Shown here in pieces: positions 46,517 through 60,754 of a DNA stretch of 64,000 bases (positions within the stretch are counted from its first letter, which is position 1; the number at the start of each line of letters is the position of its first letter). The position numbers and the translations under genes are program-made. The DNA comes from Salpingoeca rosetta (taxonomy: Eukaryota; Protista; Choanoflagellata): the NCBI GenBank assembly GCA_033442325.1, contig JAWQFM010000015.1, positions 435,735 through 499,734 of the forward strand, in the 5' to 3' direction. Below the pieces are notes generated by a model. It was not told where the DNA came from, did not search any database, and saw only the letters and a program-made list of their open reading frames with translations.

Positions 46517-49500
46517 TCACAGCATCTCAACATCATCGTCGTCGTCATCGTCATCGTCAGTGTCGGTTATGTAGTTGTATTGACGGCTGGGTGCCGAGAT
46601 ACCTGCGCCCTGAAGCTGCGGAACCGGTGACGTGAGCGATGACTCGGGAGACGTTGGCGACAGCCCAGAGGCTGTTCGCGGCGTCCCCTCGCCGCTGCCA
46701 TGCTGCGACTGCTGCTGCCGCGCCTGTATGCGACGCTGCGCACTGCGTGTCAGCATGAGCATCGGCGCCCCACCATCAGATGTCGGCGTGGTCGTTCCAC
46801 CACCAGTGCCGCTGCCGCCACTGCGCTGCTGCTGCTGCTGCTGCTGCCCACGCGACCCGCCGCCACGCCTGCTCAGCGATGCCGAGCGCGTTGACGACGC
46901 AGAGAGAGATGCAGGCGTTAACGCTGCTGCCGAGGGCGGTGTTGTCGTGTGCACAAACGACGGTGGCGCGGGCGGTGCCTCTGTCGGTGGTGACGACACG
47001 TAATTCATGCTTCTCGCGCGCTCACCGCCGCTCACGCCAGGAAGGCCACGTGACCGCACTGTGTTGCTGCTGCGCTTGGGTGTTGAGTTGCGGACCTCAC
47101 CATCGGCAGCATACGGCCTGAACGCCCCACGTGTCCGCGGCGGGCTGTCCAAGACACGGCCACCATTACGGCTGTCTTCGTTGCCGCTTCGCATGTGTGC
47201 TGAGCGCTGCCTGTTGTTCACGCCGCCGCTGCTTGCCACCTCTCTCAAACCAATCGACGCCAGGCCCATGCCTGCACGGTCTTCCTCATCATCACCACCA
47301 TCATCATCACCAGCAGCAGCATCGTCACTGTCGCCCATGCCACCTCCACGTCGTCGGCTGACACCGACCGCACGGCTGTAGTTGGCGGCCAACAGCGCTT
47401 CGTGCTGCGGCAGCAAACCAGACACGTCGTTCTCCAGGTCAAGCTCAACATCGCTCACCTCATCCACCACATCTTCGTTACAGCTGGCACCAGGTGCAGC
47501 AGGTGCAACAGCGGGTTCACGCGTGTTGCCAGCACGGCCATCACCGCCACTTTCAGTACCATCACCGCCACCAACACGGAAAACAGCGTCGTGCATGTGA
47601 CCTTGGCCTTGTGTGGGAGACTGGGCGCTCATGCGGCGTGCATACTGCGCCTGTAGCACATCCACGTCCAAGTCCACTTTTCCGCCGTGCTTTTGCTGAT
47701 GCTGTGTAGTGCCATGTGCATGTACACCATGAACACGTGTGGCTTCTTCTTCTCCCATTTCTTCTTCTTCCCCTTCGTCCTCCTCAAGCAGCGGCTGCAT
47801 GGTGTGTCTGCCAGCAACACCGCCACCACGCACCCTCACACTGCCACCACCACCATGATCGCCATCGCCATCACCACCCTCCTCCTCCTCCTCCTCCTCC
47901 TCCTCGTCACTCAACAGGCCCAGATCCCTCTTCATCGCTGTGAGCTGCTCAAGCGCCGTCTCCTGCACCTGCGACACCGTAGCCTGCGCACGCTGCATGG
48001 CATCCGCCAGCTCTGTCGACACAAAGTCGCTCGCACCGTCCTCGCTCATCGCAGCATCGTAGATGGATGGCATGGACCCCATCTCAAACACATCTGCCTG
48101 CCGCATGCTGTCATAGCTGTCCGTGATGCTGGGTCCGTACACCTGCTGATCAAACGCGCCTCCCTGAGGAGTAGACAGCCCACTGCGAAGAAGCGGTGGC
48201 TGATACTGCTGCTGATACCCGCCACCAGTGCTGCTGCTGCTGCGGCTGTGTGGGCGGGCAAAACTGTTCCTGCTGCTGTTGCGTGAGCGTGCATCGCCCT
48301 CGCCCCCGTCTTCAGGCACGGGCTCGAGCTGCAGCACGGGGCGCGAGGATGTGCGGCCACCAACAGCACCGGCGCTCGCACGGCCAGAGTCCTTGGCCGC
48401 ATCGAGGTAGCTCGACTGCCGCATGCGCACCTGGTTGGCCAGCGTGCGCGCCCGCCACCCTTGCAGCAGGTAGTGGCGCCTGTCTGGCGAGTACAGCGCA
48501 TACGCGACGACGCCAATCAGCAGCACCCACACGACACCCGCACCGGCCCACAGACCGCCAACGGTGGAGGCGCACGAATCGTTGCCTTGGCTGGCGGCGT
48601 TGCTGCCTTCTCCACCTTCTGCCTCGTTCTGCTGCTGTTCCTGCTGCTGCTGCTGTTGCTGTGGTAGTTGCGGGAACCACGCCCACTGCTGCGGTGTTGC
48701 CATGGCTCGTCCAGCCACATCTGTCGCCTGCACATCGACCGTCCACAGTAAATCACGCAAAGCAGCGACACCCGTAGGCACCACCACCTGCGTCGTGCCA
48801 GCATCAGACACGGTCACATCACCCTCGTTCACGCTGCTGTCAGCCATGCTGAGTTGAAGTGTTGGGGTGCACATGGCCCACTCGCTGTCAAACACGGGCA
48901 GCGAAGGTCCCAGCTGCTGCTGCTGCTGCTGGGACGATTGCACATCATTAAGCAGCGCTTGTGCACACGCGGCAAACGCCGTCTGACACACACCGCTGCC
49001 AGCAGCGTGAGCGAACGATTGTGTGCACATGGGCGCGGATCCAAGCGTGCATGTCGGGCTTGTGTTCCCGGTGCCGACCTGCTCCAACTGCTGCTGCTGC
49101 TGTTGTTGTTGTCGATCCTGCTGGCAACAGGTTGTGTTCCATGCAATATCCCACACACGCACGCGGCACTTGAAGGAGGCAACTTGCTCGCTCAAGGCAA
49201 CGCGAATGTCAATGGGAAACGCAGCGGCACCCACGGGCTGCCACCCCACAAAGAACGGGGACAGTGACGGCGGCTGCACAAACGAGATCTGGGGAGGACC
49301 CACGTCCACATGCACGCCAAAAGTCTCGCTGTGCGTCAGGAACGCTGGCGACGCTGATGACGACTGGGCGGCAGTGGCATCGGCAGCCGTGGCGTCAAAG
49401 GAAAGGCTCAGATCCACCCACCCATCACCACGGTGGCCGCTGCCCCCGCTGCCATCACCACCAGCAACAAGCGAGACAACAGACACATCCGCACCTTGCC

Positions 49501-58500: not shown

Positions 58501-60754
58501 TGCCGTTGCTGCCATTGCTGTTGTTGCTGTCAGTGCTGGTGGTGCTGTGATTCACACTGGTGCCAACACCAACCAGCCAACTGTTGGGTGCTGTGGGAGT
58601 GCTTGCTGTAGCATTATCATCATCATCATCATCGTCACCACTGCTGGCTAGAGAAGCGATGTGCTCGCATGCAGATCCGTCGTCGTTATCGCCGTGATTT
58701 TGAATGGAGAGTGCGGGCACCGTGCCTGCAAGCACGCCATCCCTGTATGAGAGGGCGGTGCCTGTGAGGCGGACGGGGAGGGGCGTGTCGATGGGCGCTG
58801 GTACCGCCGCTGCTGAAATCGCCGCCACCTCTGGCGCACCTGCATGTTGCGGATGTGCGTCATGCGTGCGTGTGCGTGTGTGTATGTGCGTGTGTGTGTG
58901 TGTGTGTGTGTGTGTGTGTGTGTGTGTGTGTGTGTGTGTGTGTGTGTGTGTGTGTGTGTGTGTGTGTGTGTGTGTGTGTGTGTGTGTGTGTGTGTGTGTG
59001 TGTGTCGGTGCGTCCGCGCGTAAAGGCGGGTGCATGATCGACTTGACCTTGAACGCCGGCGAGACGTCTGGAGGCAATCGCTGGTGCGGCAGAAGCTTGC
59101 GACAATTGACTCCTCACCCACCAGCTGCATCAGAGCCAAGGTCGCATAATGACTTTTGAAATCGNNNNNNNNNNNNNNNNNNNNNNNNNNNNNNNNNNNN
59201 NNNNNNNNNNNNNNNNNNNNNNNNNNNNNNNNNNNNNNNNNNNNNNNNNNNNNNNNNNNNNNNNAAAAAAAAAAGAAAACCAAAATAAAAGGGAGGGGCA
59301 CAGACGCGTGCCAGTATGAGTGTGTGTGTGTGTGTGTGTGTGTATAAAAGCGTGCGTGTGTGTGCGTGTGTGTGCGTGTGGGGGGGGGGGGGTAGTGAGG
59401 TCGCTTGTCAACAAGTGCGTCTTTGGCTGAGATGTGACGTCGCGCACACACACACACACACACACACACACACACACACACGAATAAGCACATACACATC
59501 AATACATGCACGCACACACGCACCCACCATCGTCCTGTTGGGCGCGTGCGATGAAGATGTGGAACGTGTTGGTGGAGAGCCCATCCTCGGCAACGACACG
59601 AGCGGTGACGGCAATCACAGGCTGGAGCACTGACCCGTCCAACATGTCGCCACCAGCAGCAGCACCAGCACCAGCAGTGGCAGCATCGCCTGGCTGTACG
59701 CTGTCTGTGATGAAGGATAGGGCGTCTGTCTGCGGATTGTACACGCTTCCATCTGCGCTGTGCGTGAGCTGGACACTGCTGCCTGCATGCACGGGGACTG
59801 CAGCAACCGATATGCTGCTGGGGGTGGAAGCGTTGCAGCCGACAAGAAACGACGTGCCCATGCGCACACGCGTGCAGGTGGGCGGCGCGCGTATGTGGGA
59901 CAGCTCTGCGTTGGACGAAAGCTGGCGGTAGCGTGTGGTGAACACGTGGTACTCTGGGGCCTGGAGGTCAGGCTGCACAATGACGTGGATAGCAGCTTCG
60001 CGCTCAACGCTTGAGTTTGTTGAGACGAGGTTGCCGATGGACGGGGCGAGCCAGATGAAGCGGGCCTGCGGCACAGGGGCCGGTGTCGCGTGTGTGGCAG
60101 CAAAGGGCACATTGGGGCACACGCGAACCAGGTGGGCTTTCCCAGACAGGGTTCTCGTGAACCTGCCGCTGCCGTCGCTCGTGGGCTGCACAACAAACCC
60201 TTCAAACAAGCTCCCAGACGCACTCGCTTCCAACAACGCTGTGTGTGCGTGTGTGTGGTGGGGGGAGGGAGGACATGCATTGAACGTGTGTCAGGAAACG
60301 GGGCGCGAAGGCAGGCACTTGCGCTCACGCGCACATGCACTTGTACTTGAACATGTAAACACTCATAATACACACGCATGCATGCACATGCATACACACA
60401 TGCACACATGCACGCACACATGCACATGCATATACACATGCACATGCATACACCACAGGCATACGTGCACGAACGCTTACCAATGTAGGCAGTGTTTGGA
60501 CGGAAACCGCCAGTGATGGGGACGCTCGTGGATGGGTCCAGTAAAGAGAGGGTGTAGTTTGGTGAGGGGTGTATGAGGGGCGAGGCATCTGCCGGTATGC
60601 CTTGGGAGCAAATGCTGCCATCATCCACCACGCCAGAAGGAAGAAACAGAGCGCGTGTGTTGCAGCGGTGATGGGCGGTCAACGACAGCAGCAAGAAAGC
60701 TGTCGTGACCACAGCACATGACCACAACAGCAGCAAAGGCTGCTGCTGCGCCAT
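46517..60754 (-). CDS. Giant (>=4435 aa) type I membrane protein: signal peptide, Reeler, cadherin-like beta-sandwich, Ig/TIG-like and cadherin-type repeats, single TM, ~650-aa low-complexity cytoplasmic tail
   Basis: Exons 60754-60481, 60238-59528, a possible gap-spanning exon ending ~59118-59122, and 58839-46517 (12,323 nt). All identified junctions are phase 1. Hydrophobic N-terminus. TM VGGLWAGAGVVWVLLIGVVAYALY (~48492-48563) followed by basic residues. Confidence 0.8.
59165..59264. other. Assembly gap (100 N)
   Basis: N run. Confidence 1.

Follow-up and report, generated by a model that had tools for sequence, protein, structure and literature searches.

Which protein does a giant open reading frame in the choanoflagellate Salpingoeca rosetta belong to, and is that protein a cadherin? 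The question is raised by a locus on contig JAWQFM010000015.1 (assembly GCA_033442325.1), within a stretch of 64,000 nucleotides (positions 435,735 to 499,734 of the contig; hereafter the window, whose own numbering is used throughout). An open reading frame (ORF) scan of the window showed that positions 46517-59077 of the minus strand form one open frame of 4,186 codons, and the short exons lying upstream of it carry features of the Reeler domain. A first-pass annotation, made by eye from the DNA letters, had joined these pieces into a single giant surface receptor combining an N-terminal Reeler domain with cadherin-type, TIG-like and Ig-like units. Our analysis favours, on balance, one gene of three exons that would encode a type I surface glycoprotein of 4,435 residues, anchored in the membrane, tipped by a Reeler domain and presumably acting in adhesion or sensing. 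The cadherin part of the earlier proposal fared less well.

One gene or two

Spliced in silico, the three exons of the locus (Table 1) give a coding sequence of 13,308 nt that encodes 4,435 residues and contains a single, terminal stop. As read from the DNA, exon 3 begins after the acceptor ATGCAG and requires one carried base, that is, phase 1, which is the phase of both upstream donors. The splice between exons 1 and 2 is also used in the public gene model PTSG_05904. Intron 2 contains an assembly gap of 100 N, flanked on its two sides by intron-like sequence made of (TG)n, C-runs and (CA)n. Because this gap is located inside the intron, the frames on either side of it would be linked by splicing and not by continuity, and these frames are compatible. 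Microsatellites of the (CA)n/(TG)n and CATGTG types fill the introns (58890-59020, 59320-59480 and 60390-60470), and a 130-nt (CA)n run in the exon 3 frame lengthens the apparent ORF by a false (TH)n stretch.

In the public annotation (assembly GCA_000188695.1, scaffold GL832969.1) the locus is split into two genes. The first model, PTSG_05904 (EGD74540.1; P0001 in our numbering), has 337 aa and comprises exons 1 and 2, with its reading frame running on for 9 codons into intron 2. The second has 4,121 aa and starts at ~59130, just past the assembly gap; its only simple reconstruction, with the acceptor at 58839, begins with MQLVGEESIVASFCR and lacks a signal peptide. A hydropathy scan of our spliced protein detected two hydrophobic segments only, residues 6-27, which follow the ATG at 60754 and form the signal peptide, and residues 3755-3779, which form the transmembrane helix. 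Between the two there are 56 N-x-S/T sequons, and the ectodomain holds 70 Cys residues versus 1 in the 650-aa tail. This distribution of Cys and sequons marks the region as an ectodomain, which therefore needs the signal peptide of exon 1.

The same arrangement is found in another organism, on the 13-kb Logan contig SRR14727191_32457, which is AT-richer and ungapped at the locus. Its protein P0002 is 29% identical to exon 2 (E 6e-5), and 310 nt downstream on the same strand is P0003, a large protein of 3,430 aa, again without a signal peptide of its own. Three boundaries are equal in phase between the two organisms, with an acceptor at the matching point of the Reeler domain, a donor G/GTATGT and an acceptor CACAG/ (slash, exon boundary), and the counterpart of intron 2 measures 379 nt, is ungapped and has no exon inside. 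Exon 3 and P0003 are collinear over their full length (BLASTP E 1.7e-73, 22-25% identity), and the alignment is continuous over the exon 2/3 junction, with IFI[AG][RK] a few residues before it and LSY ~30 residues after it. The islands kept in both proteins include a Cys-rich segment, CELW...AWRCL, the pre-membrane WAWFP, the tail motif VQETAL and D[VI]EML at the C-terminus. The contig, on which the locus occupies positions 1-10839, terminates within the Reeler domain, and homopolymer runs are much scarcer in P0003 than in the S. rosetta protein.

Taken together, the matching splice phases, the sole signal peptide, the distribution of Cys and sequons and the conserved orthologous locus indicate that this is very probably one three-exon gene, split by the annotation at its gap-bearing intron. 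The alternative, in which the annotation is right and a gene for a small secreted Reeler protein (PTSG_05904) stands beside an independent gene for a giant protein, has in its favour the two public models and the fact that a spliced transcript was not observed in this analysis. We nevertheless regard it as improbable, since the end of the 337-aa model is read from intron-like (TG)n right before the gap, the 4,121-aa model is without a signal peptide despite its ectodomain-type distribution of Cys and sequons, and adjacency, orientation, junction positions and phases are all repeated in the second organism, where the large part is likewise without a signal peptide. A decaying or non-functional locus, in which a long low-complexity ORF has no role, would fit the extreme composition of the protein, in which Ala, Ser, Thr, Val and Gly abound, Lys occurs only 15 times among 4,435 residues, and runs of poly-S, poly-N and poly-Q are present. 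It would also fit the absence of Pfam domains over 4,100 aa. However, an open frame of this length is unexpected by chance, and the full-length collinearity with P0003 at 22-25% identity, together with conservation of Cys, Trp, the transmembrane segment and the C-terminus, makes decay extremely unlikely. The single three-exon gene would correct a split model in the main choanoflagellate reference genome, with PTSG_05904 and its 4,121-aa neighbour becoming one 4,435-aa receptor. The first-pass annotation had already joined the Reeler exons to the 12.3-kb exon in one giant surface protein with a signal peptide, one transmembrane segment and a long tail, and this layout agrees with the phase-1 GT/AG junctions, the orthologous locus and the hydropathy scan.

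The Reeler domain and its relatives

The Reeler profile PF02014 matches the spliced PTSG_05904 protein with 21.0 bits (E 5.2e-4), where the cut-off is 21, aligning residues 76-159 to profile positions 27-110, and exon 2 alone reaches 17.9 bits. The landmarks of the domain are present, namely an early Cys, Y-x-P-x-x-x-Y, F-x-G-F, C-x(n)-A-T-H and F-x-W-x-A-P. A phmmer search against the PDB placed the F-spondin reeler chains 2zou, 2zot and 3coo at the equivalent place with E ~1, and these were the only domain-level PDB sequence matches. In a six-frame scan of the 55.4-Mb genome with PF02014, one other Reeler domain scored above the cut-off, on contig C1 with 25.2 bits. Local alignment of the two domains gave a score of 93 (z 11.7), a value not reached by any of 500 shuffles, and hhalign aligned them with E 1.7e-4 and 34% identity over 85 columns; the contig C1 domain also has an intron at the same domain point as intron 1. 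An AlphaFold2 (AF2) single-sequence model of exon 2, which leaves out the strands encoded by exon 1, had a predicted local distance difference test score (pLDDT) of 33 and a best fold-search Z of 3.4. From the profile score at the cut-off and the pairwise alignment, we accept the Reeler assignment with good confidence, if narrowly, as had been claimed from the motifs alone. The contig C1 domain (G000:C1:1416500-1419800, minus strand) is also N-terminal, right after a signal peptide, and the sequence behind it contains a poly-Thr run as well as a Cys-rich stretch.

A choanoflagellate type I receptor whose N-terminus carries a Reeler domain has already been described, Sema-FN1 (PMC8011033). Both it and the protein studied here start with a signal peptide directly followed by the Reeler domain, have a glycosylated stalk rich in Ser and Thr, span the membrane with one helix and keep a conserved motif close to the C-terminus. 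Sema-FN1, however, contains Sema, PSI, FN3 and SEA domains, none of which Pfam finds in the Reeler-headed protein, and the latter is several times longer and consists mostly of orphan sequence. F-spondin and reelin are likewise large extracellular proteins with the Reeler domain at their very N-terminus, but they are secreted and continue with spondin/TSR or reelin repeats, whereas the S. rosetta protein is membrane-anchored; the similarity to F-spondin is weak (E ~1) and confined to the Reeler domain. A Reeler-headed receptor as such was known, but the architecture of this protein agrees neither with that of Sema-FN1 nor with those of the choanoflagellate cadherin families considered below, and we would class it as an orphan, a giant mosaic surface glycoprotein with the Reeler domain at its head. 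It would represent a second Reeler-headed receptor type besides Sema-FN1, and gives a hint that choanoflagellate surface proteins repeatedly use the Reeler domain as a distal module.

This protein seems to belong to a very narrow family. When 1.84 billion representative proteins were searched exhaustively by phmmer with exon 2, only PTSG_05904 and P0002 were returned. Word-index protein searches with exon 3, with the large protein of the second organism and with the alignment of the two returned P0003 only, and even the annotated 4,121-aa protein was not returned by them. No paralogues were found in the S. rosetta genome, and a language-model search with exon 2 gave no usable match. With two organisms and no paralogues, the bearing of this family on animal origins looks limited, and the suggestion of a broad class of pre-animal receptor is not supported.

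The cadherin question

Cadherin repeats had been proposed at several places in the ectodomain. Across the gene, searched both as the whole exon and in 500-aa pieces, no Pfam match at E<=10 was obtained for the cadherin, cadherin-like or TIG families, nor did any cadherin or cadherin-like family match the orthologue at E<=10 in 500-aa pieces. Elsewhere in the S. rosetta genome, the cadherin profile PF00028 detects at least 150 cadherin repeats with 37-86 bits. Neither BLASTP nor sliding hhalign revealed internal repeats or a tandem array, and the calcium-binding motifs DRE and DxNDNxP are absent by direct reading, with LDFE and a VDPKPF-like string (the latter in the orthologue) as the only remnants. 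PDB profile searches with both alignments returned nothing usable. The assignment of this protein to the cadherins as a family is thus not supported by sequence, given the silence of PF00028, the missing calcium-binding motifs and the lack of a tandem array.

The individual units were also compared by hhalign with a cadherin profile built from 30 repeats elsewhere in the S. rosetta genome. The second N-terminal module, which had been taken for a cadherin-like unit, was rejected at 0.2% with no Pfam match, and the supposed cadherin repeat around LDFE (~51310-50770) reached 4.9% over 27 columns around that motif, with a pLDDT of ~30 and no Pfam match. The TIG-like segments were discarded as well, since they have no Pfam match and their hhalign link to the first Ig-like unit does not exceed 39%.

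A different picture was obtained for the unit proposed at ~52500-52095, although only by fold. At the profile level, hhalign gave it a 17% probability over 39 columns that cover the last strands only. An AF2 model of residues 2435-3390 (956 residues) was built from the two-sequence alignment, with a mean pLDDT of 34, and its first 143 residues form seven strands at a pLDDT of 45-63. When model residues 4-146 were compared with single cadherin domains by VIA-align, Z values of 8.7-10.8 were obtained, with a root-mean-square deviation of 2.2-3.5 A (mostly 2.2-3.0) and mostly 92-109 residues aligned. Cadherin-type domains occupied 49 of the 50 top rows both when the Foldseek hits were re-examined and in an unbiased scan of 48,161 PDB representatives. 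For unmatched models, the VIA-align baseline is a best Z of 7-8 and a Z of 4-5 at rank 50, and the comparably poor model of exon 2 reached 3.4 only, so that a Z near 10 does not come automatically with a bad model. The best Foldseek E-value for the unit was 1.4e-3, and its language-model features lay near cadherin clusters at 0.88, a value of lead strength only; a shape search of the ESM Atlas with the 956-residue model was uninformative (TM below 0.3). The modelled unit is therefore probably a cadherin-type sandwich without calcium-binding motifs, so the earlier call stands as a fold match in a low-confidence model and not as a Pfam-level cadherin repeat, and it is insufficient to name the protein a cadherin.

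Like the protein described here, lefftyrin, coherin and hedgling are very large, single-exon-rich type I surface proteins of the S. rosetta genome, but they carry many tandem cadherin repeats (37-86 bits by Pfam) where this protein has one cadherin-like modelled unit. PMC6030884 ascribes to the giant choanoflagellate cadherins a TMEM132-like module composed of cohesin and bacterial-Ig domains. As the families are defined in that paper and, reportedly, in Nichols et al. 2012 (cadherin repeats plus cohesin, the TMEM132-like module, the hedgehog N-terminal domain and others), no Pfam match at E<=10 was found in our protein for the cadherin repeat, cohesin, TMEM132 or other domains of these families. 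About 45 kb before the start of the window, a genuine cadherin repeat of 54.9 bits was observed in a 1,388-codon frame of the same scaffold (G000:C15:390854-391153, plus strand), separate from the Reeler-headed gene.

Could the protein still be a true but highly divergent cadherin, that is, a new choanoflagellate class headed by a Reeler domain? The fold matches of the modelled unit, the leaning of its language-model features towards cadherin clusters and the weak hhalign match to the domain's final strands all point that way. They are countered by a profile that remains silent in both orthologues while it recognises so many repeats in the rest of the genome, by hhalign probabilities of only 17% and 5%, by the empty PDB profile search and by the absence of both the tandem array and the calcium-binding motifs, in addition to the low confidence of the structural model, and we find this proposal unlikely. 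A related idea holds that this protein founds a family of giant Reeler-headed receptors restricted to one lineage, with an ectodomain made of cryptic cadherin-fold and Ig-fold domains that have lost their calcium-binding motifs and now lie below profile detection. We regard this idea too as doubtful, though slightly less so. If it were true, tallies of cadherins and adhesion receptors in choanoflagellates that rely on profiles would undercount the fold, and the combination of a Reeler domain with the cadherin fold would be a novel architecture close to the origin of animals. Even if only the one cadherin-fold unit is real, some choanoflagellate adhesion-type folds would be invisible to Pfam-based censuses.

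Two Ig-like units of the DTQAP/DAAGN type had also been proposed. The first (model residues 778-943) matches the Ig-like domain of ChiW (5gzt_B) with a VIA-align Z of 10.2, in the same low-confidence model, and may be retained by its fold. For the second, the piece that covers it yields 21.1 bits to Big_13 (PF19077; E 4.5e-4), which falls short of the curated 27-bit cut-off, so that here the call persists only as a sub-threshold match. Language-model features of the membrane-proximal Ig-like region lie near Big_13 clusters at 0.90. This sub-threshold match, the language-model likeness and the fold match to ChiW bring the region close to Big_13, but unlike Big_13 proper the score stays under the cut-off and the two units are dissimilar, with no mutual similarity detectable at the profile level.

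Proposed architecture and surroundings

If the three exons are spliced together, the protein would begin with a signal peptide and a distal Reeler domain, continue with about 3,500 further ectodomain residues and a transmembrane helix, and end in a disordered, acidic tail of ~650 residues. The ectodomain would be Ala/Ser/Thr-rich, Cys-containing and mostly without known domains, and could include at least one cryptic cadherin-fold sandwich as well as membrane-proximal Ig-like modules, one predicted by fold and one by the sub-threshold Big_13 match. A long glycosylated stalk could keep the Reeler head far from the membrane, and the head may bind a matrix, cell-surface or bacterial ligand; alternatively, it may dimerise weakly, by analogy with the Reeler domain of F-spondin. 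The tail might couple the protein to cortical scaffolds. By its sequence, the D[VI]EML C-terminus has the form of a putative class III PDZ ligand, as understood from the general classes of these motifs.

Several points speak against this picture. The join between exons 2 and 3 is based on inference and on the orthologous locus, not on RNA, and sequence might in principle be concealed in the assembly gap. In addition, a Reeler score exactly at the Pfam cut-off is borderline, the fold calls depend on an AF2 model from two sequences with a mean pLDDT of 34, and literature searches by locus tags found no paper on the gene. A hidden exon in the gap was considered and rejected, since the corresponding intron of the second organism is ungapped and without an exon and the protein alignment is continuous over the junction.

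Table 1. Features of the proposed Reeler-headed gene in window coordinates (a slash in a donor marks the exon boundary)
Feature	Position	Strand	Remarks
Exon 1	60481..60754	-	ATG at 60754, signal peptide, first Reeler strands; donor G/GTAAGC, phase 1
Intron 1	60239..60480	-	GT..AG, 242 nt, ends CAG; interrupts the Reeler domain
Exon 2	59528..60238	-	remaining Reeler domain and conserved second module; donor G/GTGGGT, phase 1
Intron 2	58840..59527	-	(TG)n and (CA)n runs; contains assembly gap 59165-59264
Exon 3	46517..58839	-	12,323 nt including stop; bulk of ectodomain, transmembrane segment, tail
Signal peptide	residues 1-27 (exon 1)	-	hydrophobic residues 6-27
Reeler domain	59943..60619	-	~residues 46-190, interrupted by intron 1
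Second N-terminal module	59544..59924	-	~residues 197-323; conserved in the orthologue; no Pfam match
Cadherin-fold-like beta-sandwich (candidate)	52085..52513	-	~residues 2438-2580; without canonical calcium-binding motifs; AF2 fold match
LDFE-bearing Cys-containing module	50735..51313	-	conserved; Cys and Trp kept in the orthologue; no Pfam match
Ig-like module 1, membrane-proximal (DTQAP...VDAAGN)	49694..50191	-	fold match; pLDDT 46-63
Membrane-proximal module 2	48650..49327	-	ends in conserved WAWFP; sub-threshold Big_13
Transmembrane helix, single	48488..48562	-	residues 3755-3779; conserved in P0003
Cytoplasmic tail	46520..48487	-	~650 aa, low-complexity, acidic; VQETAL; C-terminal D[VI]EML (46520-46534)

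Two other assembly gaps are present in the window, at 35561-35994 and 44517-44990, the latter ~1.5 kb downstream of the stop codon. Further downstream, a 1,397-codon frame (38763-42953, minus strand) encodes an unrelated DnaJ protein with a J domain, its C-terminal domain and ankyrin repeats. On the other side, the divergent upstream neighbour is a gene for an EF-hand protein of 171 aa (61152-62064, plus strand), which starts ~400 nt from the ATG of the Reeler-headed gene, and the two genes probably share a bidirectional promoter region. Beyond the EF-hand gene there is a 230-aa gene without Pfam matches (62468-63833, plus strand), with NAT10 further out.

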